64,000 bases of DNA from Macrostomum lignano (GCA_002269645.1 NIVC01000105.1:39992-103991); one strand, 5' to 3'. Counted from the stretch's first letter, positions 836 to 48,833 are shown. A program made the numbers and translations. The notes: a model not told the origin generated them from the sequence alone.

Positions 836-2452
836 ATGAAGCAGCAAGTCAAGGCGGCCTTAGAATCGACCTCAGCTCACGGTCTACCGAGAACCGTGAG
901 CAGTAAACCGCTGCTCATCCGTCTAATATGGGTGGCTTTATTTCTTCTCATGGCCGGCTGCTTTTTGCGAGGATTGTTTCTGTTTTCAATAAAGTTTGCT
1001 GCAAATCCGCAAACTAGCACTTTAGAGGCGAACAAAGTGGTGTTCCAGTTTCCCGATATTTACGCCTGTCACGAGACTGCTTTCTCTGCCAGCTACGCAG
1101 TCAATGTGGACAGGATTGCTGCAAATGCGATTAATTCAATAATGAACTCCACAACGCCATCCATACGGGAATACTTAGCAAAAAAGTATCTAAACGAGGC
1201 AGACGAAAGCAAAACCATGCCGCCAAATACATTCTTCTATGTATTCTCTCTACCATACTCGCTTATGGTCGACGCGCTGGCCCACAGAGCCGAGCAATCT
1301 GTCATCTCAAGTGGTGTCCTGTACAGGGAAAAACGCGGCACTCCCCACTACGAACATGTTGAAGCGACCAGCTTCTTTCACCCAATGTACCTTCGGTGCT
1401 ACAAGTGGACGCTGGACAAAGACTTTCAGACTGCCGTGTTGAAGTCCGGCTCGTGGGCCGGCATCACTGCAACGCTGCTCATCGATTCGAGCGCATCGGA
1501 GATCGAATCCAATGGCGCGCCAATTCAGCGCATGGTGTACTCAAACTACAGCTTGCTCTCAGTCTGGGAGTGGTCTCTTTCGCTGCGCGACTACTTCGAG
1601 GCCGACAGGAGCGCCGGAATTCGAGTATTCCTCGCACCGCAAGGCGAATACCCGTCCGAGTTCGTGAGCTCGTTCGTCCTGGGTCCGGGAAAGCACCACA
1701 CAGTTGAAATCGAGATGCTGCAGCAGGAGTACACAGCTGGCCAGTTCTCGTGTCGCGGTGACAGTCCCGCAGTGCAGTTTGTGAATCCGTATGATGACAC
1801 TCCGTACAATCACACCTACAGCTATTCCTACTGCTTCTACAAGTCATATCATGAAATCATTCAAAGATTGTATAATCTCTCGGGCGATATAGGACCTTTG
1901 CCATGGCCTCTTCGAGGTAAAAAATATGTCTTTAACCTGACTGGAGAGCCAAACTTTGCCAGGCTGAAGTTGAACCATTCTGACTATTCGACCATAGAAG
2001 ACGCCATTGCTAATGTCGAGGAAAACTGCCAGTTGGATCGGCCGTGCAGCAGCCTTCAGTACCGCTCGAGCGTCTCCAGCGCTGACTGGCCCATAGACAG
2101 CTCCATCTTCTCCTTCATCAACAGCACGGTCAGGGAGGCCTGGACTCAAGCCAACGCCAGGAACCTCAGCGTGCCTGCTCTGGACTTTCTAATGACTGGA
2201 AACGATTCGGTTGTGTCATCGTATGTTCGTAAGAACCTGCTTAAAGTGCACTTTAAACCGTCGCAAACGCTAAGCGATAAAATTGTGTTCTCAAGGGACT
2301 ATGGACTGGAGAACTTTGTTGCAGAAATTGGCGGCACTATGGGAATCTACCTGGGCATGTCGCTGCTCACCTTGTGCGAACTATTCGAACTAATTTACAA
2401 TATTGTCGCTATCTACAAGTCGAAGAAGTCGCAGCAACAAGTTGAAAACTGA
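836..2452 (+). CDS. DEG/ENaC-family ion channel subunit, copy 1 (538 aa, single exon)
   Basis: N-terminal STSAHGLPR (HG motif), hydrophobic TM1, FQFPDIYAC, YLRCYKW, GIRVFL..GEYP..F.LGPG, SSADWP, and TM2 NFVAEIGGTMGIYLGMSLLTLCELFEL with the GxS filter. Uninterrupted ORF. Confidence 0.93.
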   Translation: MKQQVKAALESTSAHGLPRTVSSKPLLIRLIWVALFLLMAGCFLRGLFLFSIKFAANPQTSTLEANKVVFQFPDIYACHETAFSASYAVNVDRIAANAINSIMNSTTPSIREYLAKKYLNEADESKTMPPNTFFYVFSLPYSLMVDALAHRAEQSVISSGVLYREKRGTPHYEHVEATSFFHPMYLRCYKWTLDKDFQTAVLKSGSWAGITATLLIDSSASEIESNGAPIQRMVYSNYSLLSVWEWSLSLRDYFEADRSAGIRVFLAPQGEYPSEFVSSFVLGPGKHHTVEIEMLQQEYTAGQFSCRGDSPAVQFVNPYDDTPYNHTYSYSYCFYKSYHEIIQRLYNLSGDIGPLPWPLRGKKYVFNLTGEPNFARLKLNHSDYSTIEDAIANVEENCQLDRPCSSLQYRSSVSSADWPIDSSIFSFINSTVREAWTQANARNLSVPALDFLMTGNDSVVSSYVRKNLLKVHFKPSQTLSDKIVFSRDYGLENFVAEIGGTMGIYLGMSLLTLCELFELIYNIVAIYKSKKSQQQVEN

Positions 2453-3050
2453 GTAGGGCAATAATATATTTTCAAAACGAATGTCGTCACTATATTGGTC
2501 ATATGCCGGATTTCATCATTCATATTTTAATATTTCACACGTAAAATTTCGTTGGGGTACTTTTCAATAGTAGATATAAAGACAAAACTTGCTAATCATT
2601 AAAATTCACTCATATAGAATTGTATTTCTGTAACATAAGTCAAAGTTTTGTTATTATTTGCCTCCTAACATGAATGGGAAATTTCGTTCGTGTTTTCTAC
2701 CACTCACGAACAGTGGCCAGTGCAATAAAGGTTTATCGCGTCCTTTTCAACCCATAGTCCAGTGACATACAGCAGATATGTTGCTAAGCAACGAATAGGC
2801 AAACAATAGACGCTTCCGACAATAACTGAGAGATGGAGACAATGCTGGGATTAAGTGAAGAGGGAAATTGGCGTTCCTAATTTGGCACCGAGTGGGCATC
2901 GGTCAATTGATTACTAACTCTAATAAGGCAAATTACTCACATCAGCCTCGCAGAGAGATACGAGGACAAAGCAAGCCAGTTCATCTGCTAATATATTTGA
3001 GTCAGGCATACTCTGAGCCACCTTGTCGCTAAAGACCCATAACAGAAGGC

Positions 3051-4694
3051 ATGCATCACCTGAGAGCTGCTCTCGAGACCACTACGGCTCACGGCCTGTC
3101 GCGCCTTGTCACCGGCAAGCCCCTGTACGTGAGAGTCGCCTGGCTACTGCTGTTCTGCGTCACCATGGCGCTGTTTCTCCGCGGTTTCGTCGAGTTTGTT
3201 GGGAAGCTTCGATCCAATCCGGCAACAAACTCGCTGGAAGTGAACGGCGCCAGCTTCCAGTTTCCTGACGTGTACGTCTGCTTTGAAAATCCGATCTCGG
3301 GCAGCTATGCCGCTAATCTCCATCCCTATTCAGCTGCCGAAATTAACAAGAGAATCACTCAGACCTTTGATATACTGTCAGCATACAGCTACCTGGGAAG
3401 CAGTGACCCCGATTTATTGATTAGAGGCTTTTCGTTTGTTCAGCCTCACTCTTTACCGTATCAACTGCTGGTGGATACTTTAGGAAAAAGGCATGAGCAG
3501 AGCATTTTAGTCGGCGGCATAGTTTACAAAGACTCGGCTGGAATGCCGCACTACCGTAAGTTGAATAGCAGTATATTCTATCATCCGATTCACCTGGGAT
3601 GCGCCAAATTCGTGCTCAGTGGCGCCGAAGCCGAGCTTTTAGGAAGAAGCGGAGCCAATTCCGGACTGCTACTCAAAGTTCTACTCGATGAAAACTCCTC
3701 ATATATACCGGCGAACGGAGCGCCCATCAGAGACGCCGTGTACACGATGGAGTCTGCAATACCGGTCTCCGACTGGAGCCTCTCGTCCGGCGATCTCTTA
3801 GCCCCGGACCGAGCATCGGGACTTCGAATCTACTTGGCGCCTCCCGGCGAGTACCCGACCGACTTTGTGACCTCATTTTCACTCGGCCCGGGAAAGTATC
3901 ACACCGTGGAGATTGACATGAAGCAGCAGGAGTACAAGGCTGGCCAGTTCGACTGCCTGAGCCCGATGCCGGATGTGCAGTTCTTGAATCCGTACCACCG
4001 GACGCCGTACAATCATTCTTACAGCTACTCATACTGTTTCTACTATGAGTACCAAAGTCTCTACCAGAGAGCGCTGAACATGTCCGGGGATAAGACCCCG
4101 ATGCCTTGGGAACTGAGACACAAAGATTACATGTTCAATGTCACTTCAACGCCGAATATTCTTGATATTTACCCGAACTCAGAGTTAATCAATAATATTG
4201 ACGATGTTCAACAGCATGCAACAAAAGCTTGCGAGTCCAAGAGACCCTGTAGCACTCTTGAATACAGCGTGAGAATATCCAGCTCCGACTGGCCAACACA
4301 AGGATCGCTCACTGGATTCGTCAACAGCACAGTAGGAGCCGTGTGGCTCCAAGCAAATATGTTTCACCTGGAAGTGCCAGTGCTTGACTTTTTATTCAAC
4401 GGTAGTGACGTTGACGTGCTCACTTACCTGAGAAAGAATCTTCTTAAAGTGTTTTTCAAGCCGAAGAGTCTGCAATGCGACAAGGTCAGCTTTTCTAGAG
4501 ACTACGGAGTGTCCAATTTCATATCGGACGTTGGCGGAATCATGGGCATCTACTTGGGAATGTCGATTCTAACTTTGTGCGAGGTTTTCGAACTAATCTA
4601 CGATCTGATTAGCTATTGCAACTCACAGCGCAAAGCAAAGAGTTCCACTTCGGTGGCAGCTTCGTCCGAGATGTCAGTCAAAACACTGCATTGA
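3051..4694 (+). CDS. DEG/ENaC-family ion channel subunit, copy 2 (547 aa, single exon; appears the most divergent paralog)
   Basis: TTTAHGLSR, TM1, FQFPDVYVC, HLGCAKF, YSYSYC, SSSDWP, TM2 FISDVGGIMGIYLGMSILTLCE. Confidence 0.92.
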   Translation: MHHLRAALETTTAHGLSRLVTGKPLYVRVAWLLLFCVTMALFLRGFVEFVGKLRSNPATNSLEVNGASFQFPDVYVCFENPISGSYAANLHPYSAAEINKRITQTFDILSAYSYLGSSDPDLLIRGFSFVQPHSLPYQLLVDTLGKRHEQSILVGGIVYKDSAGMPHYRKLNSSIFYHPIHLGCAKFVLSGAEAELLGRSGANSGLLLKVLLDENSSYIPANGAPIRDAVYTMESAIPVSDWSLSSGDLLAPDRASGLRIYLAPPGEYPTDFVTSFSLGPGKYHTVEIDMKQQEYKAGQFDCLSPMPDVQFLNPYHRTPYNHSYSYSYCFYYEYQSLYQRALNMSGDKTPMPWELRHKDYMFNVTSTPNILDIYPNSELINNIDDVQQHATKACESKRPCSTLEYSVRISSSDWPTQGSLTGFVNSTVGAVWLQANMFHLEVPVLDFLFNGSDVDVLTYLRKNLLKVFFKPKSLQCDKVSFSRDYGVSNFISDVGGIMGIYLGMSILTLCEVFELIYDLISYCNSQRKAKSSTSVAASSEMSVKTLH

Positions 4695-6283
4695 AATGTC
4701 GATTAAAGAGACTCTGCTTTTAATTAATCAGACAATTACCTCTCTGAGAAATCAAAGCTTCAATAATTCTCTTATAATCAAGATTCGTGTGGGCTGAAAT
4801 TAATTTTTACGAAAACTAAATTAAAACCGTTTGTTCAGATAATGTAACCAGTGGTTCAAACGAGTTTGTAGGCGTGCCCTTTAATTTCAATAATTCAAAT
4901 GTGCAAACTTATTCAGCCGTGGATACGTCGCTCTAATGATCACGGCTCGTTCCTAACTTCCCATGGGAATGAGGCGTCAAGTCACTTTACATGAAGTATC
5001 CCCAGTCTTTACTTGCATGCGAGCACTTCCTTGGGCACCGATATGTATTGTTGAAGTCTGGGTTATTTTGTGTCCTATAAATGCAAACTCTACTAGATTG
5101 TTCGATTCCTTAATTTGCATCCCAGTGACTTCGCACACTTTTGTCTTGTTATTTCCTTTATGCAACGATTACTCTTCATTTAGGCCTTGCTATAATTAAC
5201 TATTGCTGTAGCCTACACTAAGCAACAGTATCAATTTTCTTAGAATGCTTTTCTGATACAGTAAATTTATTCTGCACCCCGTAATTCAGGTATTTCACTT
5301 CTACATGCTAAAGCAATTTCGATAAAAGATTATTTTTAGAAAACAGCTTGATTCACTCGTACATTGCAAGTTCCTCAGTAGCATACAAATGTTTAACAAT
5401 GAAGATGCTTTCTACATGTTGTTGACGACGATAATATAATATAACAACGACCATAACGACAAAGACGATGTCCATGTTTTCAAATTAACCTGTCGACTCA
5501 TTGGCTCATTGGACATTATTTTGTCAACTAGCTCGTACAGCTAGTGACGACCTTTTCTAAAAGTGTTCTTTGTTACATTTATAAATGAGCTTAAGGGATG
5601 AGGGTTCACAGGAATCATATCCGAGCTGGATAAACACTCAATAGATAGTTCATAATTTAATTTTACTCGTTACTAGATGCTTCGGTCCTCTTCTAGCCCT
5701 CCGCTTCTTTGAGATAGCGATGATGTGTCTCCGTTGGCAGCGTCAGGTTGTCTGGTAGCGGCGGGGGGATGTCAGCGCGTTAACAATGGCGTCGAAGTCA
5801 ATAATCTGAGGTAGAGGTTGATTCATTCATAAAATGCTACTGTGAGTGAGTAATAAAACACTCGAAGTACAAACACTATCCTTGAAACGATTTCGATACC
5901 CTAAGAGGATTTATTAATTTTTGATTAACGATTGGTTTCTTTACTCTAGAGTTAAAAATTGGTGAACTCAACTCCAATTCCGTTATTTCTAAAAGAAGAC
6001 GTCCTTTCTGTTTTTTTCTTGTATTATTAGGCCACATCTCTGATTTCGCTTACTGAACTCAAGGAATAACGCTAACGCCGACGAGTTGAACTGTTTCGTA
6101 AACTAACATCGGTCTTGTATACGGCAACTGTCAGAATTAAAGAAGAGAACACCGCGCGCAGAAAAACCAGAACAACAGGAAGAGGAGCACGCTAGATCGC
6201 TAGAAGTAAGTGATTACAAAATTTTGTTCCCAGACTTGCGGTCTGAAAGTGGGAGTTCGTGCGTTTAGACATTCTTACATAAT

Positions 6284-6286
<3 letters not shown>

Positions 6287-6313
<27 letters not shown>
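6287..6313. repeat. (CT)n microsatellite
   Basis: Run of ct dinucleotides. Confidence 0.9.
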
Positions 6314-6318
<5 letters not shown>

Positions 6319-6516
6319 ACTCTCCGGTGTGCTAAAGCGATCTCTTCATGGCCACTTTTAAATACTGCTGAGAGCGAATGATACGACAGAGCAATAGAAA
6401 ATGTAGCTGACCAGTCTGCAAAATAGGTTTATCAGTGACGCGCACACACAGGTTTTTTATTTCTACAATAATGGAAATCAATTAGCTGCACTGACACACG
6501 CTTTTGCTTGTGATTT

Positions 6517-6526
6517 GGCAAACAAT
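6517..6526 (+). promoter_or_regulatory. Forkhead-like motif (GGCAAACAAT) shared among channel upstream regions
   Basis: Identical 10-mer at 2798-2807 upstream of copy 2. The GCAAACA core is found upstream of all seven copies and fits the RYAAAYA forkhead consensus. Confidence 0.3.
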
Positions 6527-6733
6527 CGGTAGATTTGATGAGTATTTTATGCTATTAACTGAGCTGGTCATTAATTAGCATGACATTAGCTCAACAAATA
6601 AATCCTTTCAACTGAACTTTTCGCAAATAGATTGTTTGCAATCAGCCAGAAAACCGGGGCTAAAAAGTATAACCGATCTGTAGAGCAAGCAGTTAAGTAG
6701 ATTTGTTCCTAGCAAAAACCTCAACTGAGCAGC

Positions 6734-8395
6734 ATGAAGCAGCTGTTTCGATCAGCGCTGGAGTCCAGCAGTGCTCATGGACTGCCGAGAACGGTCAGCA
6801 GCAAGAAACCACTGTTTGTCAGGCTGATCTGGTTGGCTCTGTTCGCCTTCATGCTTGTCTTGTTTTTAAACAGCCTAGTTCGATTCACTGAGAAACTCAT
6901 CGCGAATCCGCAAACCAGCTCGATTGAGGCGAACTCCGTCACCTTCCAGTTTCCGGATATTTACGCCTGCCATGAAACTCCCGTGTCGGCCAGCTACGCG
7001 GTAAATGTAGACAAGAAGATGGCACTGGAGATCAACTCTCTATTAAGTAATACAACAAGGAAAATTCGACAATTTTTTACAACTAGAAATCAGTCTGGTA
7101 GGGACGAAAACATTCGGCCGGTTACATTCGCTTACGTGCATTCGCTTCCCTACTCGCTTTTGGTCGACGCGCTGGCCCACAGGGCCGAGCAATCTGTCAT
7201 CTCAAGTGGCGTCCTGTATAGAGGAAAACGCAGCACTCCCCAGTACAAACATATTGAAGCGACCAGCTTCTTTCATCCCACGTACCTTCGGTGCTCGAAG
7301 TGGACCCTGGACAAAGACTGGCAGAAAACCGTGTTGAAGTCCGGCTCGTGGGCCGGCATCACTGCAACGCTGCTCATCGACTCGAGCGCATCGGAAATCG
7401 AATCCAATGGCGCGCCAATTCAGCGCATGGTGTACTCAAACCACAGTCTGCTCTCGGTCTGGGAGTGGTCTCTATCAATGCGTGACATCTTTGAGCCAGA
7501 CAGGAGCGCCGGAATTCGAGTATTCCTCGCACCGCAAGGCGAATACCCGTCCGAGTTCGTGAGCTCGTTCGTCCTGGGTCCGGGAAAGCACCACACAGTC
7601 GAAATCGAGATGCTGCAGCAGGAGTACACAGCTGGCCAGTTCTCGTGTCGCGGTGACAGTCCCGCCGTGCAGTTTGTGAATCCGTACGATGACACTCCGT
7701 ACAATCACACCTACAGCTATTCCTACTGCTACTACGCGTTGTATAACAAAGGTCTTCAAGAAACGCTTAACATGTCCGGAGGGATCGGTCCTCTGCCATG
7801 GCCTTTGAGAGGGAAGAACCATGCATTCAATTTTACCGGCGAGCCCAGCCTGGCAGACACGTCCGCGGCTGAGGTGAAGCCCGACTTTTTTACTGAACTG
7901 CTTGACAATATCGATAAATACTGTCAGCTGCAACGTCCGTGCTCCAGCCAGCAGTACAAGGCTAGTGTCACCAGTGCTAAATGGCCAACTCAAAGCTCGC
8001 TTGCTTCCTTCATCAACAGCTCGGTGAAGCAGACCTGGACTCAAGCCAAGGCCAGGAACCTCAGTGTACCTGCGCTAGACTTTCTGATGACAGGAAACGC
8101 ACCCAGTGTCGCTTCGTTTATTCAAGAGAATGTTTTGAAAGTGCAGTTTAAGCCGCTTGCTGCACTCTGCAATAAAGTGGTGTTCTCAAGGGAATACGGC
8201 TTGGAAAACTTTGTATCGGATATCGGAGGCGTCATGGGAATTTATCTGGGCATGTCACTACTAACTCTTTGCGAACTGCTTGAGCTGCTGTATGACACTC
8301 TTGCTTGGTGCACTTCAAAGAGTAGACATTCCGCGAATGCAGTTGGGAGTCATGTCGCCTCCTCGAAAGCCACATCTGTTCTAGAAATAAGCTGA
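6734..8395 (+). CDS. DEG/ENaC-family ion channel subunit, copy 3 (553 aa, single exon; closest to copy 1)
   Basis: SSSAHGLPR, FQFPDIYAC, YLRCSKW, YSYSYC, SAKWP, TM2 FVSDIGGVMGIYLGMSLLTLCE. Confidence 0.93.
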   Translation: MKQLFRSALESSSAHGLPRTVSSKKPLFVRLIWLALFAFMLVLFLNSLVRFTEKLIANPQTSSIEANSVTFQFPDIYACHETPVSASYAVNVDKKMALEINSLLSNTTRKIRQFFTTRNQSGRDENIRPVTFAYVHSLPYSLLVDALAHRAEQSVISSGVLYRGKRSTPQYKHIEATSFFHPTYLRCSKWTLDKDWQKTVLKSGSWAGITATLLIDSSASEIESNGAPIQRMVYSNHSLLSVWEWSLSMRDIFEPDRSAGIRVFLAPQGEYPSEFVSSFVLGPGKHHTVEIEMLQQEYTAGQFSCRGDSPAVQFVNPYDDTPYNHTYSYSYCYYALYNKGLQETLNMSGGIGPLPWPLRGKNHAFNFTGEPSLADTSAAEVKPDFFTELLDNIDKYCQLQRPCSSQQYKASVTSAKWPTQSSLASFINSSVKQTWTQAKARNLSVPALDFLMTGNAPSVASFIQENVLKVQFKPLAALCNKVVFSREYGLENFVSDIGGVMGIYLGMSLLTLCELLELLYDTLAWCTSKSRHSANAVGSHVASSKATSVLEIS

Positions 8396-9224
8396 GTTTT
8401 TTGCAGCTGAAATTCAAGTTTGAATCAGCTTTTTAAACTTATTATACGACTCATTAATGCCGTAATGAGCGCATGCAGCGCTGCATCCTTTATACTTTTT
8501 TTATAGCCTTTAACTTTGCAATGTTTATCATTGACAAGGCCTTTAATAAAGCATTAAGTGGTTTTTTATTGTTTATCGATGCTACCCTAACTTCTCTGAC
8601 GAGACTTCTTATTCGAGAATTGTCTGACGAAAAATGTACTGTTTTCTATTTACGTATATATATTATCCAAACAAAGGTTTTTCCCAACAAAAGCGTAATT
8701 GTAGCAAAAATCGTGTGTATCAGACCTGATGTGATGCGAGCCAGTGAAATTTACTTTCTATCCTGACTTACTGATCACAAATGTCGAAAGATTTAATAAT
8801 ACTGCTAAAGCTGTACAGGAAAAGATGAAGTTAATGCAATGAGTTTGGCAAACATATTCTATCAACTGCCAATCTATCAAATCTATTGCCGAGGCCGCTT
8901 CTATCGGCAATAAATTCGATTATTGGCAATAAAAAATGAGCTATTATCAGAAAGGCAGACCAGGGAAAAGGAAATGTTTGACGTATAAATCAAAGCCATT
9001 ATTTATTCAGTAAATATACGCTTACAAGAATTGATTGCAAAGCACTCAAGGCCCTCGTATGTGAATTTAACATTGATAAGTTTCTGTTCATGCTAATTCC
9101 GATTAATTTAAGCACTGGCTCAAAACGAGAACCGTTGGTGTGCGCAGTATTAGTACAACTCATTGACACATCATCAGTTTCTCTCCTAGAATCAAAGTAT
9201 TAAATACACTGCGCCAAGAGAAAT

Positions 9225-10910
9225 ATGCAGCAAGTGAGAATAGCTGTGAGCTCTACGACTTCGCACGGACTGCCAAGAGTCGTGTCGAACAAGCCTGTGT
9301 ATGTGCGGATAGCCTGGCTCCTGCTGTATCTGCTCATGCTCAGCCTGTTTCTCAAGAGCTTCTTTGAATTCGTTCAAAAGCTACAGTCGCAGAAGGTGAC
9401 AACCTCAATAGAATCGGGCGTTGAGACTATCCGTTTCCCGGATGTGTGCATTTGCTTTGAAAATCCGATATCGGGGAGCTACTCCAGCGTCATTGACAAC
9501 AGCACCGCGGCAACAATTAATGCTACCTTCAGCGTTGTGGACGAAGAAATTAGAAGTTTTGCGATCAGGCATAACTATACTGAAAAGAAGCTTCAAGAGC
9601 TAAAAGTAGAAAGCAGCTTCTTATATGTGTTCGGTCTGCCCTACACGATTTTATTTGACAGTCTGTCTCATAGAGTCGAACAGAGCGTCATATCGAGCAG
9701 CATCATCTATATTAACGACGTTGGTGAGCCAACTTATGCTCAGATTGACACAAGAGCTTTTAACCATCCGCAGTACCTTCGATGTCTACAGTGGACAATC
9801 AACAGCACCTGGCAAGAGAAAATGACCACGACCGAGTCGTGGGCTGGACTCACCGTCACCTTGCTGTTGGACACTGACTCGTCATTCTTCGAGCAGAATG
9901 GCTCTCCAATAAAGAAGCGGACATTCATTCCAGATGGCACTGAAGTCCCGATGTCCGATTGGACCTTCTCAATTAGCGGCTACAGAGAGTCGGACAGACT
10001 TGCCGGACTGAAGGTGTTCCTGACTCCGCCTGGCGAGTATCCATCGGACTTCGTGCACTCGTTCTCTCTCGGTCCGGGTAAATATTATACAGTTGAAATT
10101 GGCATGAACCGGCATTGCCTAACTGAAAATCAGTTCGACTGTGTTGGAAGCGGCCATCCAGAAGTCCAGTATGTCGATCCGTACGATATGTCACCGATCA
10201 GCCATGCCTACAGCTATTCCTACTGCTTTTACGAGGCTTACCACCGCTTGACCCAGCAGCTTTTTAATCTGTCCGGGCATATTGGTCCGCTGCCATGGCC
10301 CCTGAGAAGTCGGAAGTATCTGTACAATATCTCTGCCCGACCGCACTTTGCCAGCGTTGACCACGACAGCTCAGTATGGCTTGAACAGACAAAACTAACG
10401 GAAAAGATCCAACAAGCTTGCAAACAGAAGCGGCCCTGCAGCACACTGGACTATGCTGCCAGCATCTCCAGTACCAACTGGCCGACCCAGAACTCCCTCT
10501 TTTCCTTCATCAACAGCTCAGTAAGGCGGACTTGGACTAGAGCCAAATCCAGGAACCTTAGCGTACCAGCGCTCGACTTCCTCATGACCGGAAATGCGTC
10601 CAGTGTGGCGTCGTATGTTCGCAACAATTTGCTGAAGGTGCACTTCAAAGCAAAAAGCGTCAGTGGCGACAGGATCGTTTTTTCTATCGACTATGGATTC
10701 TCGAATTTTGTTTCTGAAGTAGGCGGCGTCATGGGTATCTACTTGGGCATGTCACTATTGACATTATGCGAGCTGCTGGAGCTGCTGCACGACTTTGTTG
10801 CCCGGTTTTGCCGACGGCGCGATGCAGACACATCTCATGGAAGTACTAGTAACGTCGAAGTGTGTAATGTACATGTACAATCGCCTAATTGTAAAATTTC
10901 TCCTCAGTGA
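9225..10910 (+). CDS. DEG/ENaC-family ion channel subunit, copy 4 (561 aa, single exon)
   Basis: STTSHGLPR, IRFPDVCIC, YLRCLQW, YSYSYC, STNWP, TM2 FVSEVGGVMGIYLGMSLLTLCE. Confidence 0.93.
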   Translation: MQQVRIAVSSTTSHGLPRVVSNKPVYVRIAWLLLYLLMLSLFLKSFFEFVQKLQSQKVTTSIESGVETIRFPDVCICFENPISGSYSSVIDNSTAATINATFSVVDEEIRSFAIRHNYTEKKLQELKVESSFLYVFGLPYTILFDSLSHRVEQSVISSSIIYINDVGEPTYAQIDTRAFNHPQYLRCLQWTINSTWQEKMTTTESWAGLTVTLLLDTDSSFFEQNGSPIKKRTFIPDGTEVPMSDWTFSISGYRESDRLAGLKVFLTPPGEYPSDFVHSFSLGPGKYYTVEIGMNRHCLTENQFDCVGSGHPEVQYVDPYDMSPISHAYSYSYCFYEAYHRLTQQLFNLSGHIGPLPWPLRSRKYLYNISARPHFASVDHDSSVWLEQTKLTEKIQQACKQKRPCSTLDYAASISSTNWPTQNSLFSFINSSVRRTWTRAKSRNLSVPALDFLMTGNASSVASYVRNNLLKVHFKAKSVSGDRIVFSIDYGFSNFVSEVGGVMGIYLGMSLLTLCELLELLHDFVARFCRRRDADTSHGSTSNVEVCNVHVQSPNCKISPQ

Positions 10911-11525
10911 ATTTTTATTAGGAAATTATAGCAGAACGTTTAAACAAAAAAGCTATCTATGTGTCAGAGAATTAGTGTCCGTTATATACTCTCGTACGTT
11001 GTTTTGATTGTAAACGCGTAAAATTTAGGCTTGTATTTTATACTGATAAGAACTTTAGTAATGTAATTTTAAAAACAAAAAAATCAATAGAAATTCTATT
11101 TTAAAGAATTTGAAGCGATTCAAGGTGTCGCATATTTAACGTTTTATACACTATAGTCTCTAGTTAGTTTCACTTTAGCTTACCTGTCAATCATCTGCCT
11201 ACTGTGTATTAAGTAGAAGTGTATATAAAAGCGTATTGCAAAAATTAGCAGCTCATGTTGACATAGATTTGAGAATCAAAGTCCATTTGCTTTGCCAACA
11301 TTGCGCTAGCAGTTTAAAATTCGCTAAAACTTTGCTATGACACCTCAGTGCAGATAGCTGTTTGCTCGGCTTATGCAAACAGAAGATAGGTAAATGAGTC
11401 AGCAAATTCTGATATTTGCATCACAAAGCAAACGTAAATGGGATTATTAAATAGACCAAAAACCGTTAGAGAAGCTAAAGTTAAACCAGCTTGTGTTTCA
11501 CGAACAGCCTTGGAGAGGCCACAGC

Positions 11526-13163
11526 ATGCAGAAGTTGCAGCTAGCGCTCACTCAGTCCACATCTCACGGACTGCCTAGAGTGGTCTCAAACAAGCCCATC
11601 TACGTGAGAATAGCCTGGCTGTTACTCTTTCTGCTCATGTTTAGCCTCTTCCTAAAGAGCTTCTTCGACTTTGTCAACAAGCTTAAATCTCAGTTGGTGA
11701 CGTCTTCTATTGAATCGCGGAGCGAGAAGTTCCAGCTCCCGGATGTGTACGCTTGCTTTGAGAATCCTGTGTCTGGAAGCTATTCCGGTAACATTGGTGG
11801 CAGCACCGCCAGAGCCATCAATGACAGCTTCAATAGTCTAGATGAAGAGCTAAGGAACATTAAAGTTAAACACGGATTTACTCAGAAGCAGCTGCAAGCG
11901 CTTGTCATGCAAAACAGTTTCGCCTACGTGTTTAGTCTGCCCTACAAACTGCTATTCGACAGTCTGACTCACCGAGTCGAGCAGAGCGTCATATCTAGCA
12001 GTGTCAGCTTCATCAGCGCCAACGGAGAGCTGAGACGAGCTGAATTGGAAGCCAATGAGTTCAACCATCCGCAGTACCTTCGCTGTCTGCAGTGGGCCAT
12101 CAACAGCACCTGGCAGGAGAAAATTATCTCAGACGAGTCGTGGGCCGGACTCACGGTCACTTTGCTTCTAGATAACAACTCGTCCTTCGTAAAGTCAGGA
12201 GGATACCCGATTCCGCTGAAGGCTTTTCGACAAGACGGCACAGGCGTACCAGTCTCTGACTGGACTATGTCAGAGAAAGGTTACTCAGAAGCTGACAGAG
12301 TGGCAGGGCTGAGGGTGTTTTTGAGTCCAGCTGGAGAGTACCCGTCGGATTTTGTGAACTCATTCGTTTTAAGTCCAGGAAAATTCCACTTGATCAAGAT
12401 AGAACAGATTCGGAACGTACTCGCCGAAAATCAGTTCGATTGTGTTAAAAGCCGGCACGAAGTTCAGTTCGCCAACCCGTACGATCTCTCAAAGTACAGT
12501 CACTCGTACAGCTACTCCTACTGCTACTACTATGAGTACCACAAGCTTTTCCAGCAGTTCTTCAATCTGTCTGGCGAAATAAGTCCACTTCCGTGGCCTC
12601 TAAGAAGTAGGAAGTATCTATACAACTTTTCTAGTTCACCAAATTACATGGATTTGGATCCGTCTGTGTTGATCAATCAGGCAACCATTACAGAAAAGGT
12701 TCGACAAACCTGTTTGACAAAACAGCCTTGCAGCACACTGGACTACAGCACCAGCATCTCTGGCGCTGACTGGCCTACTCAGAGCTCCCTTGCTTCCTTC
12801 ATCAACAGCTCAGTGAGACAGGCCTGGACTCGAGCGAATTCCAGGAACCTCAGTGTACCTGCGCTTGACTTTCTGATGAATGGGAAGGCATCCGATGTGG
12901 CCGCATATGCTCGAGAAAACCTGTTGAAGGTGCACTTTAAACCTAAGAGCATTAGAAGTGACAAGATAACTTTCTCCATTGACTACGGTGTTTCTAACTT
13001 TGTATCGGATGTTGGCGGCATCATGGGGATCTATTTGGGCATGTCGCTGCTGACTCTTTGCGAACTGCTAGAGCTGCTGTTCGACCTTGCTGCCTGGAGT
13101 TACTCAAAGAGCGATAAAGTCAAGTCGGCTTCGGAAGAAACTGATCCTGAGACAGCGACTTGA
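11526..13163 (+). CDS. DEG/ENaC-family ion channel subunit, copy 5 (545 aa from ATG 11526, single exon)
   Basis: The ORF-track start at 11493 is non-ATG. ATG at 11526 (MQKLQLAL) aligns with paralog starts. STSHGLPR, FQLPDVYAC, YLRCLQW, GADWP, TM2 FVSDVGGIMGIYLGMSLLTLCE. Confidence 0.92.
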   Translation: MQKLQLALTQSTSHGLPRVVSNKPIYVRIAWLLLFLLMFSLFLKSFFDFVNKLKSQLVTSSIESRSEKFQLPDVYACFENPVSGSYSGNIGGSTARAINDSFNSLDEELRNIKVKHGFTQKQLQALVMQNSFAYVFSLPYKLLFDSLTHRVEQSVISSSVSFISANGELRRAELEANEFNHPQYLRCLQWAINSTWQEKIISDESWAGLTVTLLLDNNSSFVKSGGYPIPLKAFRQDGTGVPVSDWTMSEKGYSEADRVAGLRVFLSPAGEYPSDFVNSFVLSPGKFHLIKIEQIRNVLAENQFDCVKSRHEVQFANPYDLSKYSHSYSYSYCYYYEYHKLFQQFFNLSGEISPLPWPLRSRKYLYNFSSSPNYMDLDPSVLINQATITEKVRQTCLTKQPCSTLDYSTSISGADWPTQSSLASFINSSVRQAWTRANSRNLSVPALDFLMNGKASDVAAYARENLLKVHFKPKSIRSDKITFSIDYGVSNFVSDVGGIMGIYLGMSLLTLCELLELLFDLAAWSYSKSDKVKSASEETDPETAT

Positions 13164-14445
13164 CAGTCTTTGCCTAATATTTGCTACCATGACGGGTGGC
13201 CTTGGTATTGTATAAATAATTTGTTTATTGTTTACGAATCCTTGACTAAAATTTGATGTAAAATGAGCTGGAAGAGGCCTGCTATTGACCTCTTTTGTAA
13301 CTCAGAATGTATGCATTCTGATGCTGATGTCAGCATTCTCGGAGCCTACCGACAGTAGTGACTGTTGTTGCGGTTTCGATTCGGACATGTTGGACTCTCA
13401 TCCCAGACCAGTTGTAGCATAAATAAAAAAAGTAGTGCGATGCGGTGGTTTTGTTGTTTGTCGAGTCTTGTGTGAAATTTGAAAGATTGCGTGAGGATCT
13501 TGAAGATTTCGGTGGCATGTGCTGGTTAATAATACATTGTAAATCAGCTCACTGAAATTTTCTGAAGTTTGTGGGCGTTATAACAAAATACTCCTTTGTT
13601 AAAACGAATTAACATACGGTAAGTAATATGAAATGTCAATATGTCATACTAATTAAATGCTGATAAACTAATGATGCCGTATTATTTTTGAGGAACTTGC
13701 AAAATAATCTCATGACACACATTCTAGGAAAGTTTTTAAATTTAACGTGGTACTTTAGTGAGATTTTTCTTAAATTGTACAGTACGGTACGCCACAAAAT
13801 AAAGTACAGCAAGGTACGAGTAAAGCAATATACTAAAAATAAAAAGAAGATATTACTGTATACTAATAAACGCAAGCAGACTGACGCTCCTTACCTATTA
13901 TTTTTGCTTTCTTTTTTCTTCTCTACTAGCAGACAATAGGTCTTAACAGAAGTTTAAAAAGCTCGAAATTTCACACCGGTCAAAAGGAAGAATCGTTCAT
14001 AAGCTAGAGACTTCGCTTGGTCCAAATGTCTTGCTAGTTTCTTCCGTTAACGAAATTAACGAAATTTTGGGCTTGTAAAAGCAACTCGCCTAAATGAGTA
14101 TTATTTGACTAATGTGACTTGGGCTCCAGAAACTTGTGTTAGCTAACTAGCAATAATATCAATCAAACAAATTGGTTTACCAAAATGAAACTCATAGATG
14201 GAACTTAAGACGTCAGCACACAGCATCTGTTAGTCTAGATAATACTATACAAATATACTAGACGTTGTTCGCGGATGTAATTAATATTTGGCTATAGATA
14301 CCCTGACTGCAGGCTAATCAAATTCTCGAGAGTACCAAAGCAGACAAGCAGAGCAAACATTGTTGACCCTATAAGAGAAAACCCTAGGATCAAAACGAGA
14401 CAGAATATAATATATCGAATTCGTGGAAACAGAGTCTGCAAAATT

Positions 14446-16128
14446 ATGCAGCAGGTTAAGCTCGCCCTAACTCAAACGACTGCTCACGGACTGCCAAGAG
14501 TTCTCTCAAGCAAGCCAATCTATGTTAGAGTGGCTTGGCTACTTCTGTTCTTGCTCATGTTTGGTTTGTTTCTAGAGAGCTTCTGCAAGTTTGTCACTAA
14601 GCTGAGGTCCCGAAAAGTGACGAGTTCAATCGAATGGGAAGGCGAGAAGTTCCAGTTCCCGGATGTGTACATGTGCTTTGAGAATCCAGTGTCGGGCAGC
14701 TACTCCAGTTTCATGGACAGCAACACTGTGGTGGCAATCAATGATAGCTTTAGCCAATGCGTGGCCCAGCTGAAGCAGTTTGCGAATAAGCATAATTTCA
14801 GCGACGAATACACGGAACAAATAATCGCTAATAGCAGCTTAATGTTTTTACAAGGTCTACCATACAAGTTGCTATTCGACAAGCTGGCTCACAGAGTCGA
14901 ACAAAGCGTCATTTCAAGCAGCATTATGTATCTACACGAAACTGGACTGCCAACTTATGTTTCAGTAGAAACCAAGGCATTCAACCATCCGCTGTATCTT
15001 CGCTGCCTAAAGTGGACTATCAACAGTACACTGCAAGATAAAGTGACCGCGTCCGAGTACTGGGCGGGACTCACTGTTACTCTGCTATTGGACACAAACT
15101 CGTCCTTTGTAAAACCTAGCCGTAGTCATCTTTCTTTGTGGAAAACCGGCTTCCCAGACGGCACAGAGATCCCAGTGTCCGACTGGCTGCTGTCAGTGAA
15201 CGGCTTTGCAGAACCGGACAGATTGGCTGCAGTGAAGCTTTTTCTAAGCCCACCTGGCGAGTATCCGTCTGAATTTGTGAGCTCCTTCTCGCTGAGTCCT
15301 GGGAAATATCACACCGTCGAAATTGAAATGGTTAGAAATTTATTCACAGAGAACCAGTTTGACTGTCTGCCCCAACTGTCCGAAGTTCATTTTACGAATC
15401 CTTACGACCTGTCTGCGTACAGCCATGCGTACAGTTATTCTTACTGCTACTACTATGAGTACCATCGGCAGTTTCAATCGACTTACAATATCTCTGGCTT
15501 AATAAACCCTCTACCATGGCAACTAAGGAATCGTAACTATTTGTATAATTGTTCGGCTACGATAAACTATTTGACGATGGATGTCAAAAACGGTTTCCTT
15601 TCAGCAGCGATCCAGAGTGTGTCAGGCAATGTTCGGACTGCATGCAAAGGAAAACGACTTTGCAGCACACTGGACTACAGTGCCAGCATCTCCAGTGCCG
15701 ACTGGCCGACTCAAAGCTCTCTGAATTCGTTTATCAGTTTCTCTGTGAGGCAGGCCTGGTCAAGAGCCAAGGCCAGAAACCTTAGCGTACCTGCGCTCGA
15801 CTTTCTCATGACTGGCAACGCATCGAGTGTTGCCACCTATGTTCGCGACAACTTGCTTAAAGTTCACATTAAACCAGGTTGCGTTATGTGCAATAAGATC
15901 ACGTTTTCTATTGACTATAACTTCTCAAGTTTCGTCTCAGAGGTAGGCGGCATCATGGGAATTTATCTGGGCATGTCGCTGCTGACTCTGTGCGAGCTGC
16001 TCGAGCTGCTTCACGACATTATTGTATGGTATTGTAAAAGGGTCGATCGGGTGTCTTCTAAGGAGCGAGATTCTGATGGCAAAACTTCTGCATCATCCGT
16101 ATCTGTTGTTGAAATCGACATGGACTGA
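14446..16128 (+). CDS. DEG/ENaC-family ion channel subunit, copy 6 (560 aa, single exon)
   Basis: TTAHGLPR, FQFPDVYMC, YLRCLKW, YSYSYC, SADWP, TM2 FVSEVGGIMGIYLGMSLLTLCE. Confidence 0.93.
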   Translation: MQQVKLALTQTTAHGLPRVLSSKPIYVRVAWLLLFLLMFGLFLESFCKFVTKLRSRKVTSSIEWEGEKFQFPDVYMCFENPVSGSYSSFMDSNTVVAINDSFSQCVAQLKQFANKHNFSDEYTEQIIANSSLMFLQGLPYKLLFDKLAHRVEQSVISSSIMYLHETGLPTYVSVETKAFNHPLYLRCLKWTINSTLQDKVTASEYWAGLTVTLLLDTNSSFVKPSRSHLSLWKTGFPDGTEIPVSDWLLSVNGFAEPDRLAAVKLFLSPPGEYPSEFVSSFSLSPGKYHTVEIEMVRNLFTENQFDCLPQLSEVHFTNPYDLSAYSHAYSYSYCYYYEYHRQFQSTYNISGLINPLPWQLRNRNYLYNCSATINYLTMDVKNGFLSAAIQSVSGNVRTACKGKRLCSTLDYSASISSADWPTQSSLNSFISFSVRQAWSRAKARNLSVPALDFLMTGNASSVATYVRDNLLKVHIKPGCVMCNKITFSIDYNFSSFVSEVGGIMGIYLGMSLLTLCELLELLHDIIVWYCKRVDRVSSKERDSDGKTSASSVSVVEIDMD

Positions 16129-16399
16129 CGGCCAAATACGAGCGTTCCTTCGATTTAAAAAATCGAAGATATACATTCAACTAATACTACTTCTTTTGAA
16201 GCGAAAAAAAAATTAGATTGATGCATTGCAATTAAATGAAATTGCTCATGGTTTCAAACTCGCATTACGCAACAGAGAAAAAATTTCGAGCAGCTTTTAA
16301 CTTTTTTTGCTCACACGTTATGGAGACTAGGTTTCATGAAGTAAGATATTTGTAAAGTTTAAGGTTTGTGTGGTTTTGAGTATGTGAATTTTAGGGTTT

Positions 16400-16975
16400 G
16401 TGAATCTAGTGGTTTGTGAAGTTTATGTTTGTGAAGTTTAGGGTTTGTGAAGTCTAGGTTTTTTGAAATCATAGATAGGGTTTTTGAAGTCTAGGGTTTG
16501 TGAAGTCTAAGGTTTGTGAAGTCTAGGGTTTGTGAAGTGTAGGATTTGTGAAGAATAGGGTTTGTTAAGTCTAGGGTTTGTGAAGAATAGGGTTTGTGAA
16601 GGCTTGGGTTTGTGAAGTCTAGGGTTTGTGAAGAATAGGGTTTGTGAAGTCTAGGGTTTGTAAAGTCTAGGGTTTGTGAAGTCTAGGGTTTGTGAAGAAT
16701 AGGGTTTGTGAAGAATAGGGTTTGTTAAGTCTAGGGTTTGTAAAGTCTAGGGTTTGTGAAGAATAGGGTTTGTGAAGTCTACGGTTCGTGAAGTCTAGGG
16801 TTTGTGAAGAATAGGGTTTGTGAAGGCTTGGGTTTGTGAAGTCTAGGGTTTGTGAAGAATAGGGTTTGTGAAGTCTACGGTTCGTGAAGTCTAGGGTTTG
16901 TGAAGAATAGGGTTTGTGAAGGCTTGGGTTTGTGAAGGCTAGGGTTTGTAAAGTCTAGGGTTTGTGAAGTTTAGG
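16400..16975 (+). repeat. 16-bp telomere-like minisatellite TAGGGTTTGTGAAG(TC/AA), about 35 units
   Basis: Tandem units read directly. The array degenerates toward its left edge. Confidence 0.9.
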
Positions 16976-17024
16976 GCCGTGCCATCTATCGCCCATCTCC
17001 TCACAAAAACAGGCCCTCTCAAAA

Positions 17025-17215
17025 AACCAAGAGATTGGGACGCCCACCAAGAGACAGGGGCGCCCACCATGAGACAGGGACGCCCACCAAGAGACAGGGA
17101 CGCGCGCCCACCAAGAGACAGGGGTGCCCACCAAGAGACAGGGGCGCCCACCAGAGACAGGGGCGCCCACCAAGAGACAGGGGCGCCCACCAGAGACAGG
17201 GGCGCCCACCAAGAG
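17025..17215 (+). repeat. 19-20-bp minisatellite CCAAGAGACAGGGGCGCCCA
   Basis: About 9 tandem imperfect units, with degenerate copies continuing to about 17285. Confidence 0.85.
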
Positions 17216-17916
17216 CTGTCAAACAAAAGGCAGGGATGCCCAACAAGAGACTGAGCCGCTCACCATAAAGAGACAGGGTCGCCCATCTGTCTTTAATCTT
17301 CGCCCTACAAACTTTTAGAAAATTCAATCAAACAAGATAAGAAAGTTTTAGATTCTTGAGGTCTGAAGACTATAATTCAAAATAATGTTGAGAAAATACA
17401 GCTATGAAGTTTCATGTAACCAGGAATAATTTCGACAGCGATTCCGTCAAAAAAATGTCAAACAGGTGATTTATTGCAATCTTTTTTGTTGACACGCGTG
17501 TTTATTATAGCTCATGATTAGTGAGTCCATAGCCAGACATATCAGGCTCTTAAAGTGTAACATTGATGCGTTTACATAAGCAGCGAATAGGGAAAGGTTT
17601 CTGCATTATCACAAAGCAAACAACGGAAAAATTAATAAATTGGCTCATGGGACAAAGTAAATTTGTTCTTATCAATACTGGCTCATGGATTGGATCAAGC
17701 TTGATTGCCTGCCCAACTTGAATGAGTTATGGTCTGGCGCTTATTAGTTCTATCTAGAGCAGCAAGCAAATCATCGAAGTCGTTGGAACTGTGTCCACAC
17801 ACACGGAGAGTTGACACAGTGGATAGAAAACTAGACGTAAAAATCCCATGACTAGTTTAAGGAACTCGCTGCAGACGCAATATAACTGCATTGGTGTAGC
17901 CCTTGAAACACTGAAC

Positions 17917-19614
17917 ATGACAGACGACATGCAACAGCTAAAGAGTGCTTTGAGCTCTACGACGTCGCATGGACTGCCTAGAATTGTCTCGAACAGGCCT
18001 GTCTATGTCAGGGTTGCCTGGCTTCTTCTGTTTCTGCTCATGTTCAGCCTGTTTCTCAAGAGCTTCTCCGAGTTTGTCATCAAGCTGAAATCGCAGAAAG
18101 TGACCAGCTCTATTGAATCGGAGAGCGAGAAGTTTCAATTCCCGGACCTGTACATGTGTTTTGAAAACCCGTTCTCTGCCAGCTACTCGGGAAATATTGG
18201 CCTCAGCACTGCGGCAGCAATCAATTATACATTTAACCGCTGGGAGAGTCAGTATCGAGCTTTATTAGAATACTTTAATATAACTGGACCAGATGCGGCA
18301 GAAAACGTTCGTGACAATAGTCTGCTGGCCCTGCAAGGTCTGCCCTACAAGCTGCTCTTCGACAAGTTCGCTCACAGAGTCGAACAGAGCGTCATCGAAA
18401 GCAACATAATCTACATTCAGGAAAATGGAACTCCAGGTTCCGCAGCCATAAAATCTACTGAGTTCAATCATCCGATGTACCTCCGGTGTCTCCAATGGAC
18501 CATTAACAGTACCTGGCAGGGGAAAATGACAACAGCTGAGTCTTGGGCGGGACTTACAGTCACCATTCTGTTGGACACTAATTCGTCTTTATTGGAGTCC
18601 GCAGGTTATCCACCGATCCCAAGGACTTATTTCAAAGGCGGCACTGAGATCCCAGTATCTGACTGGCTCTTGTCGATGAATGGCTACACTCAGGCGGACA
18701 GAGTCACTGGACTAAAGGTGTTCTTGAGCCCGCCTGGCGAGTACCCGTCCGACTTTGTGAGTTCATTCTCATTGGGACCAGGGAAATTTCACTCCGTCGA
18801 GATCGAAATGATTCGAAGTGCTTTCAAAGAGGATCAGTTCGACTGTCTTACCAAGCAACCTGAAGTTGAGTTTACGAATCCTTACGATCTGTCTGCGTAC
18901 AGCCATGCGTACAGTTATTCTTACTGCTACTACTATGAGTACCATAAGCAAGCGCAACAGCTTTACAACCTATCCGGCAACATTAACCCGTTACCGTGGC
19001 CTCTGAGGCATAAGAAATACTTTTACAACGTAACAAATACACCAAATTGTTTTACATACTATTTTTTGGGAAAATTTTACGAAGAGGATCCTAATTTTTC
19101 GGATAAAATCCGAATTGCCTGCAAAGGGAGGCGACTTTGCGAAGCAACGGATTACAGTGCCAGCATCTCCAGCGCTGACTGGCCTACACAGAGCTCTCTG
19201 TCTGCTTTCATCAACACCTCAGTGAGGCATGCGTGGGCAACAGCAAAGTCCAGGAACCTCAGCGTACCTGCACTCGACTTTCTCATGACTGGCAACGCAT
19301 CGAGCGTAGCCTCGTATGTGCAGAGCAACCTTCTCAAAGTCTATTTCAAGCCAAGATGCCTGATGTGCAACAGAATCTTTTTCTCTATTGACTACGGATT
19401 CTTGAATTTTGTCTCAGAGGTAGGCGGCGTGATGGGCATCTACTTGGGCATGTCGCTGCTGACACTGTGCGAGCTGCTTGAGCTGCTCTACAGCATTATT
19501 GCCAGCCGTTATTGTGCGAAAGGCGACAATGCTTCGTTAGAAAAAGCTCGGGAACAAACCAACGATGGAACCGTAATGCAGTCGTCATCGAGTTCTACTG
19601 TTTTACCGGCTTAG
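17917..19614 (+). CDS. DEG/ENaC-family ion channel subunit, copy 7 (single exon; start ATG 17917 or 17929, longest ORF from 17848)
   Basis: MQQLKSALSSTTSHGLPR at 17929 aligns with paralog starts. FQFPDLYMC, YLRCLQW, SADWP, TM2 FVSEVGGVMGIYLGMSLLTLCE. The exact start codon is uncertain. Confidence 0.92.
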   Translation: MTDDMQQLKSALSSTTSHGLPRIVSNRPVYVRVAWLLLFLLMFSLFLKSFSEFVIKLKSQKVTSSIESESEKFQFPDLYMCFENPFSASYSGNIGLSTAAAINYTFNRWESQYRALLEYFNITGPDAAENVRDNSLLALQGLPYKLLFDKFAHRVEQSVIESNIIYIQENGTPGSAAIKSTEFNHPMYLRCLQWTINSTWQGKMTTAESWAGLTVTILLDTNSSLLESAGYPPIPRTYFKGGTEIPVSDWLLSMNGYTQADRVTGLKVFLSPPGEYPSDFVSSFSLGPGKFHSVEIEMIRSAFKEDQFDCLTKQPEVEFTNPYDLSAYSHAYSYSYCYYYEYHKQAQQLYNLSGNINPLPWPLRHKKYFYNVTNTPNCFTYYFLGKFYEEDPNFSDKIRIACKGRRLCEATDYSASISSADWPTQSSLSAFINTSVRHAWATAKSRNLSVPALDFLMTGNASSVASYVQSNLLKVYFKPRCLMCNRIFFSIDYGFLNFVSEVGGVMGIYLGMSLLTLCELLELLYSIIASRYCAKGDNASLEKAREQTNDGTVMQSSSSSTVLPA

Positions 19615-28286: not shown

Positions 28287-28469
28287 GTGAGAAAAGGGGG
28301 TTGTAGACTGGCTGTTTCAAGTGAAACACAAAAATAGGGTCAAGGAGAGAGGACAAGCTAGGTGGGGAAGAGAGGGGAATCTATCTGGTTGGAAAGAAAT
28401 TGAATGTAAGGAAAGGAAAAAGAATCTAGATGGGAGAGAGAGAGGGAGGAATCTATTTAGGAGAGAAGG

Positions 28470-29160: not shown

Positions 29161-29344
29161 AAAGAAAAAAAATAAATTAGGTGGGAGTGAGAAATAGGGG
29201 AATCAAGGAGACGTAGGGGAATTCCAAAACAGATAAATCTATACAGGAAGCGGAACCAGGACAGCAGAGAGATAGAGAGAGGAATACTCGTAGGGAAGAG
29301 TTAAGTAGCAGCTGAACAGTCGCAAACTGAACTCTTCTGCACAG

Positions 29345-48695: not shown

Positions 48696-48833
48696 GATAC
48701 TCTGTCCCTGCATGTTCAGGTTAACATATAATCTAAAGTCTGAATTTGTTTCTAAAATACATATGAAAATCACGTTACATTTCAAACTCAGAAAAAATAT
48801 ATTTGTTAAAATGAAACAACCGAACCTCAACAG

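Follow-up and report, generated by a model that had tools for sequence, protein, structure and literature searches.

A run of uninterrupted reading frames in the genome of the flatworm Macrostomum lignano raises the question of what these frames encode, whether they form a receptor family not described before, and how they came to be free of introns. The frames lie in a stretch of 64,000 nucleotides (nt), here called the window, whose position 1 corresponds to position 39992 of NIVC01000105.1 (GCA_002269645.1, assembly Mlig_3_7), in the same orientation. An initial annotation had described an array of seven intact, intron-free genes on one strand, encoding channels of the DEG/ENaC superfamily. 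Our analysis confirms this description and indicates that the seven genes, so far unannotated, are new members of a known family; they belong to a divergent flatworm branch of it, and their disulfide scaffold is notably reduced. In an open reading frame (ORF) scan of the window all seven are found uninterrupted on the plus strand at 836-19614, and they encode 538-561 amino acids (aa) when counted from conserved ATGs, essentially the size range of 538-565 aa first given. All seven match Pfam ASC (PF00858) at 121-145 bits and E-values of 1e-35 to 5e-42, where the Pfam gathering cut-off is 23.6 bits. We refer to them as c1 to c7:

c1, 836-2452, plus strand: DEG/ENaC subunit gene, single exon, 538 aa; ASC match with E 1.8e-36, residues 9-519 on profile positions 2-455 of 455.
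c2, 3051-4694, plus strand: DEG/ENaC subunit gene, 547 aa; identity to the other copies is 42-47%, which makes it the most divergent.
c3, 6734-8395, plus strand: DEG/ENaC subunit gene, 553 aa; 70% aa identity with c1.
c4, 9225-10910, plus strand: DEG/ENaC subunit gene, 561 aa; ASC match with E 4.8e-42; the copy used for the structure model.
c5, 11526-13163, plus strand: DEG/ENaC subunit gene, 545 aa if translated from the conserved ATG, 556 aa from a GTG start at 11493.
c6, 14446-16128, plus strand: DEG/ENaC subunit gene, 560 aa.
c7, 17929-19614, plus strand: DEG/ENaC subunit gene, 561 aa if translated from the conserved ATG, 588 aa if an in-frame upstream ATG at 17848 is used.

Six of the copies match ASC in a single stretch, from profile position 2 or 3 to 455 of 455, and c2 matches in two stretches. 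Because each ORF covers the profile from end to end, no coding intron is needed and the whole channel domain lies in one exon. An in-frame stop is present 6-55 codons 5' of every conserved ATG, and by our own estimate the chance of an open frame of about 540 codons is roughly (61/64)^540, or about 1e-11. The spacers between copies measure 598-2039 bp. A tblastn search, even at E=50, found no eighth copy and no pseudogene remnant or decayed copy in the spacers or the rest of the window. The array could extend past the left window edge, as c1 begins only 835 bp in.

The architecture is the same in each copy: a short N-terminus with the HG motif, a first transmembrane segment (TM1), an extracellular domain of roughly 430 residues and a second transmembrane segment (TM2). 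In c4, the model and the alignment together place these elements as follows:

9264-9269, plus strand: HG motif of c4.
About 9297-9389, plus strand: TM1 of c4.
About 10698-10832, plus strand: TM2 of c4.
10746-10754, plus strand: G-M-S filter of c4.

The HG motif is invariant in the seven-way alignment (H14, G15), with the His at residue 14-15. The short stretch before HG in the initial annotation is therefore borne out, except that c7 may carry up to about 40 residues there if its upstream ATG is used. After TM1, all seven have the motif (F/L)PD(V/I/L)(Y/C)xC(F/H)E(N/T), in which P72, D73, C77 and E79 are invariant. Also invariant are the small residues at the degenerin site, G500-G501, which align to the GG of ASIC1a, and the filter G508-M509-S510 within MGIYLGMS(L/I)LTLCE, which aligns to GAS in ASIC1a and GIS in FaNaC. 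The C-tails after TM2 are short and mutually unrelated, and no PPxY motif occurs in any of the seven copies, in agreement with the short C-tail without a PY motif reported at the outset.

Structure prediction points the same way. For c4, AlphaFold2 with an alignment of 66 sequences gave a model whose mean predicted local distance difference test score (pLDDT) is 91.8 and whose predicted template modelling score (pTM) is 0.85, with helices at 25-55 and 511-536. In a Foldseek search of the PDB its first match is Malacoceros FaNaC1 (8on8; E 2.4e-23, template modelling scores 0.60/0.64), followed by Aplysia FaNaC, ASIC1a, ASIC2a, ASIC5 and ENaC; these matches span 490-576 aligned columns with E-values of 1e-16 to 1e-23. 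A PDB profile search with the seven copies returned FaNaC at 7.6e-15, ASIC1 at 3e-13 and, weakly, PPK26 at 8.2e-06, with alignments that cover essentially the HG/TM1 and palm/TM2 regions only. Pfam, the profile search and Foldseek agree, and judged from sequence profiles and the predicted fold we regard membership of the DEG/ENaC superfamily as solid. The seven copies are very probably functional channel-subunit genes.

Which part of the superfamily do they belong to? BLASTP identity to FaNaC and ASIC1a is just 20-26% over long alignments, and by this measure the copies therefore have no solid place in any characterised DEG/ENaC subfamily and are not one-to-one orthologues of such subfamilies, as the initial annotation had held. 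FaNaC (Malacoceros FaNaC1, PDB 8on7-8ona; Aplysia FaNaC, 7yvb/7yvc) provides both the best structural and the best PDB sequence match, and shares with the copies a helical finger, the HG motif and a GxS filter (GIS in FaNaC, GMS in the copies). However, identity to FaNaC is 16-18% in the structural alignment and 20-26% by BLASTP, Aplysia FaNaC lies outside the 41-member clade around the window genes, and FaNaC keeps the canonical cysteine set, of which the copies have lost eight members. The comparison with ASIC1a is similar: fold and topology are as in the copies and the TM2 regions align (GGxMG(I/L)(Y/F)(L/I)G(M/A)S), but identity is only about 20-21% over full-length alignments and ASIC1a too falls outside the clade. 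ASIC orthologues have been reported to be absent from platyhelminths (PMC9949801).

The loss of cysteines sets the copies further apart. ASIC1 has 14 canonical extracellular cysteines forming 7 disulfides, a number that varies among accepted members of the superfamily. In rat ASIC1a numbering, six of the 14 are present in the seven copies (93, 194, 290, 308, 359 and 365), while the other eight are lost (172/179, 312, 321, 323, 335, 343 and 361); under the ASIC1a pairing, this costs the thumb four of its five disulfides. The core pairs 93-194 and 290-365 are kept. By homology, three disulfides are predicted to be left, 77-187, 306-405 and a re-paired 334-399 in c4 numbering, the last corresponding to an inferred 308-359 pairing in ASIC1a numbering. 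The thumb helices are still predicted in the c4 model despite the cysteine loss. Across relatives the loss is graded: a sister group of Logan/ENA/TARA sequences has 10 of the canonical cysteines, more distant M. lignano paralogs have 6-9, and nearly all are present in the other 103 representatives.

The closest database relatives of the array, P0001 to P0007, are M. lignano paralogs; they are not orthologues, because they share a genome with the window. P0001 (A0A1I8GD92, 572 aa) scores 781 bits against the profile of the seven copies and is 48-51% identical to every one of them, P0002 (Mlig033047.g1 / PAA48052.1) scores 403 bits at 35-40% identity, and P0003-P0007 score 178-259 bits at below 30% identity. 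The even identity of P0001 to all copies might be taken for an expansion after speciation, a reading that the common genome rules out. Both P0001 and P0002 are uncharacterised and located elsewhere in the genome, outside the array, and they share with the window copies the reduced cysteine set and the TM2 sequence GIYLGMSLLT(L/I)CEL; unlike the copies, P0002 is interrupted by a GT-AG intron of 77 nt, and its HG region is degenerate. In a neighbour-joining (NJ) tree of 132 sequences, the seven copies group with P0001 and P0002 at 100% bootstrap, the clade that adds four further M. lignano paralogs also receives 100%, and addition of ten Logan/ENA sequences gives 78%. A wider, weakly supported group takes in another M. 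lignano protein together with Echinostoma and Cichlidogyrus sequences, and fits a report in which some DEG/ENaCs of platyhelminths cluster separately and are highly divergent (bioRxiv 10.1101/2022.06.28.497943). Beyond this flatworm-rich clade support falls below 50% and we claim no sister subfamily. None of 100 bootstrap replicates recovered the seven copies as monophyletic; P0001 is nested within them, and a group of P0001, P0002, c1, c3 and c4-c7 (63%) excludes c2. The proposal of an undescribed receptor-channel family is thus overstated, as the proteins are full-length ASC members of a flatworm-rich clade with same-genome paralogs already in the databases. The three M. lignano channels of Dandamudi et al., for which we translated the constructs in that paper's supplement, were also considered as candidates for the window genes and rejected: long alignments (35-65 bits) give no more than 20-26% identity, and these channels belong to a different clade.

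Two database entries in this clade deserve comment. P0001 is named 'Acid phosphatase' in UniRef, yet its sole Pfam domain is ASC, and the name is apparently a mislabel. The P0002 model (489 aa; L001 9730-11547, NIVC01004250.1) looks N-terminally truncated: homology to the window proteins runs about 270 bp 5' of the annotated start, where the HG region reads RGHLSARLS, and no nearby ATG was seen in this extended 5' region, which may reflect a decaying gene or an upstream exon.

How did the genes come to lack introns? All seven have zero coding introns, while Macrostomum genes average about 5 (PMC5730564; PMC10468722) and other genes in the window, for an M28 peptidase and a WD40 protein, are multi-exon. 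The intronless state is therefore a property of the gene family and not of the genome. One explanation, favoured at first, is a retroposed founder: the mRNA of an intron-bearing DEG/ENaC gene would have been reverse-transcribed and inserted, and the processed copy then amplified in tandem. The contrast with the genome mean and with the multi-exon neighbours speaks for such an origin, and there is a precedent in Hydra HyNaC12, an intronless DEG/ENaC for which retrotransposition has been proposed (PMC4212090). However, self-BLASTN and inspection of the upstream regions found no poly(A) tract, target-site duplication or flank similarity around the seven copies, and since no DNA similarity survives outside the coding sequence, a retroposed founder would leave no trace at this divergence. 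Moreover, the M. lignano clade is uniformly intron-poor, with 0-2 introns per gene. P0004 is intronless, P0002 carries the 77-nt intron (at c4 residue ~289), P0005 a single intron of about 73 nt, and P0003 two, one of them at a position common to P0003 and P0005. The sister-clade gene P0012 on a TARA metagenome scaffold is likewise a single ORF, although prokaryote-style gene calling favours intronless models in data of this kind. The pattern is explained equally well by stepwise intron loss or by a far older event; in our view, a founding retrocopy for this array is unlikely. Judging from these gene structures, the intronless state would either predate the array or have arisen by stepwise loss. 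As an aside, P0012 (522 aa), from a marine organism, adjoins two PiggyBac-type transposase ORFs (DDE_Tnp_1_7) within L006 579-4569.

The 5' ends of the genes provided little further information. A pyrimidine-rich tract ending in CCTAG is found 21-35 nt upstream of the ATGs of c1, c3 and c4 only (809-813, 6708-6712 and 9185-9189). These sites could be 3' splice or spliced-leader (SL) trans-splice acceptors; SL trans-splicing or an intron in the 5' untranslated region was dropped as a general explanation because four of the seven genes have no such site and the pattern is inconsistent. TATA and splice-acceptor signals examined upstream of all seven ATGs gave none that is consistent. A 189-aa ORF lies antisense to c3 (7475-8044, minus strand); it has no Pfam match, and we take it as spurious, probably a consequence of sense-strand codon composition.

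Intronless, clustered expansions are not new to this superfamily. Drosophila pickpocket (PPK) is a lineage-specific DEG/ENaC expansion that serves chemo- and mechanosensation, although PPK sequences are very distant from the copies and PPK genes are mostly intron-bearing and cysteine-rich. A closer parallel is found in the mite Tetranychus urticae, with 106 divergent ENaC genes of which 92.5% are intronless, in clusters of up to 17, that have been proposed to be chemoreceptors (PMC5203786). Like the window array, these genes are divergent, intronless, clustered and lineage-specific, and stand next to a few intron-rich conventional genes. The mite expansion nevertheless arose independently, in another phylum, and is much larger; its clusters are rich in pseudogenes where all seven window copies are intact, and its genes are often below Pfam detection where the copies all score well above it. 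HyNaC12 resembles the copies in having one uninterrupted ORF while the rest of its family carries introns, but it is a cnidarian singleton with no close sequence relationship to them. Lineage-specific expansions are thus the rule among DEG/ENaCs, and because intronless, clustered ones are already on record, the array leaves the general picture of the family unchanged, and the idea of such an expansion is not new.

Are the copies old genes, or recent or artefactual duplicates? Pairwise aa identity ranges from 42 to 70% and defines three groups, c1 with c3, c4 to c7, and c2 alone. In self-BLASTN, nt similarity of 66-78% is confined to the coding regions and ends where they end, with none detected among spacers or flanks. 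Synonymous divergence (dS, Nei-Gojobori) is 0.9 for c1/c3 and 1.6 to above 3 (computable maximum 3.6), or saturated, for other pairs, and the ratio of nonsynonymous to synonymous divergence (dN/dS) is 0.13-0.24 where dS is computable (0.9-3.6). Saturated synonymous sites and the lack of similarity outside the coding sequence indicate old duplicates and not duplicates of the assembly. The substitution pattern accordingly bears out the divergence and selection suggested by the initial annotation, in that the sequences themselves show the copies to be old tandem duplicates under purifying selection. The M. lignano assembly carries redundancy related to recent polyploidy, in blocks at 95% or more (PMC5730564), and by sequence divergence the duplications in the array are far older than that.

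One pair of copies appears to have exchanged sequence since duplication. The two sides of the tract are:

1250-1830, plus strand: gene-conversion tract, c1 side, from the beta-ball/palm up to the thumb start.
7145-7725, plus strand: gene-conversion tract, c3 side, ~580 bp.

Between these segments nt identity is 85-100%, as against 45-75% in the flanking parts of both genes, and synonymous-codon identity is 0.76-0.97 within the tract and 0.21-0.70 outside it. On this contrast the tract looks like a later gene conversion between the non-adjacent c1 and c3, across c2.

Selection is not uniform along the protein. Among the seven copies, change is fastest in the finger (38% mean aa identity; ratio of nonsynonymous to synonymous differences, pN/pS, 0.48), thumb helix alpha5 (25%; 0.61) and the C-tail (14%; 0.85). 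The beta-ball/palm beta3-beta8 region is intermediate (42%; 0.36), and the pore, palm and wrist are conserved, with 58-64% identity and pN/pS of 0.21-0.32 in the N-terminus with TM1, the other palm segments and TM2. In every region pN/pS is below 1, and diversifying selection is not demonstrated.

The array is missing from the protein sets. The collection we searched consists of 5.8e9 (5.8 billion) protein clusters and holds the GenBank PAA proteins of the M. lignano assembly. A single-sequence search of these clusters with c4 did not find c4 itself and returned only its 49% paralog P0001, a profile search with all seven copies again returned only P0001 and no near-identical homeologs, and an exact look-up of the c4 protein gave no match. 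The same collection contains three genes a few kb away on the contig, and the neighbouring caspase is found in it at 100% identity. The GenBank annotation derives from a genome-guided RNA-seq transcriptome from which transcripts overlapping repeat annotations were filtered out (PMC5730564). Transcription too low for whole-worm RNA-seq assembly, or removal by the repeat filter, are possible causes of the absence; the second is conceivable because such a filter might flag a family of seven copies whose spacers contain minisatellites. The repeats concerned, which also account for the long c6-c7 spacer, are:

16349-17215, no strand: minisatellites with 16-bp and 20/39-bp units in the c6-c7 spacer, found by Tandem Repeats Finder and lying outside the genes.

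The copies might instead be transcriptionally silent relics, or redundancy in the assembly of a hidden polyploid genome, as the public protein sets lack all seven although the annotation is based on RNA-seq. Yet they differ from one another at 22-34% of nt and 30-58% of protein positions, far above assembly redundancy, and all seven frames are open over about 1.65 kb with dN/dS well below one, which rules out long-standing pseudogenes. We consider this explanation very improbable, although a recent silencing of the copies is conceivable.

What, then, might the channels do? Taking sequence and precedent together, the explanation we find fairly probable is that these are functional paralogous DEG/ENaC subunit genes, most likely sensory or ligand-gated. 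The sensory or ligand-gated role taken by itself is a best guess that we rate slightly above even, by analogy with other expansions and from the domain pattern of divergence. The subunits would assemble as trimers, possibly heteromers, to form cation channels of the amiloride family; the diversified peripheral domains would determine what opens or modulates them, whether a peptide, a small molecule, an ion or protons; and expression may be low or restricted to a few cells, which would fit the absence from an RNA-seq-derived annotation. It has also been suggested that the loss of ASICs proper in platyhelminths was compensated by radiations of other sensory channels (PMC9949801).

Several points weigh against a sensory or ligand-gated role. 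We know of no ligand for any member of the clade to which the window genes belong. The faster change of finger and thumb, with pN/pS below 1, may reflect relaxed constraint instead of adaptive diversification for ligands. Absence from the RNA-seq-based annotation could mean that the genes are silent, or it could be an artefact of the repeat filter. In addition, three M. lignano DEG/ENaCs of a different clade gave no response to FMRFa-type or other peptides (PMC9234716). Finally, the sequence would suit a mechanosensory or an epithelial role equally well.

The last point amounts to an alternative of its own, since the DEG/ENaC family includes mechanosensory and epithelial channels such as MEC-4 and ENaC. 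The copies would then be mechanosensory channels, or constitutively active epithelial or osmoregulatory Na+ channels, present as tissue- or stage-specific variants in an animal exposed to intertidal salinity swings. Such functions are in keeping with the full conservation of the pore and gating motifs, with the lack of identifiable ligand-binding residues in the copies, and with the silence of the tested M. lignano relatives towards peptides. Two indirect observations argue the other way: divergence is concentrated in the peripheral extracellular domains, and absence from a whole-animal RNA-seq annotation suits cell-restricted receptors better than broad epithelial expression. We regard mechanosensory or epithelial channels as a possible but doubtful account, and continue to prefer sensory or ligand-gated subunits.

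The remainder of the window holds ordinary genes and much repetitive DNA. No Rfam matches and no tRNAs were found in the window. The M28 peptidase and WD40 genes, both annotated, make clear that ordinary intron-bearing genes do occur in this genome region. The other features are:

27661-29819, plus strand: M28 peptidase gene, multi-exon, 366 aa, with minisatellites inside its span, apparently intronic.
32425-33840, minus strand: single-exon caspase gene, GenBank-annotated (P0168, 471 aa); Peptidase_C14 match with E 1e-28, SHG and QCCRG motifs.
39409 to beyond 43840, plus strand: WD40 gene, multi-exon, with minisatellites inside its span, apparently intronic.
20095-20542 and 21242-22224: near-perfect arrays (100% and 99% matches) of the 17-bp unit AGCACCAAGGGGCGCCA, just downstream of c7; the unit recurs inverted at 50239-50396, about 28 kb away.
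24427-25922, 28460-29159, 41868-44590, 44878-46373, 46947-48696 and 50946-61418: very large minisatellite arrays.

The caspase has an N-terminal region of ~250 residues with no Pfam match, and its nearest non-self match is a Palaemon protein at 29%. The database protein to which it is 100% identical is encoded on NIVC01000105.1, and this match placed the window in M. lignano. Much of the right-hand 44 kb consists of the large minisatellite arrays, among them 393 copies of a 27-bp unit (10.5 kb) and 118 copies of a 23-bp unit. They yield many long spurious ORFs on both strands together with strong excursions in GC and AT skew. This load is consistent with the 15% simple/tandem-repeat content reported for the M. 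lignano genome.

The array nonetheless has consequences for how flatworm channels are counted. Published DEG/ENaC phylogenies drew on protein sets that lack these seven intact genes, so that the flatworm repertoire is under-counted, and the gap points to a systematic blind spot for clustered gene families with low expression in annotation that is based on RNA-seq alone and filtered for repeats. This matters in M. lignano, which is a transgenic flatworm model, as DEG/ENaCs are a main route through which invertebrates achieve fast signalling by peptides, protons and mechanical force. The graded loss of the thumb disulfide ladder, in turn, offers a natural series for asking what thumb disulfides do in gating. 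More tentatively, we speculate that the seven genes and A0A1I8GD92 represent a macrostomid-specific branch with a 'cysteine-poor thumb', having three and not seven extracellular disulfides, that serves as a chemosensory repertoire in a few sensory cells for ligands new to the family. If this were true, the branch would in part take the place of the ASICs that flatworms have lost, and would have been overlooked because RNA-seq-based annotation failed to capture its genes.

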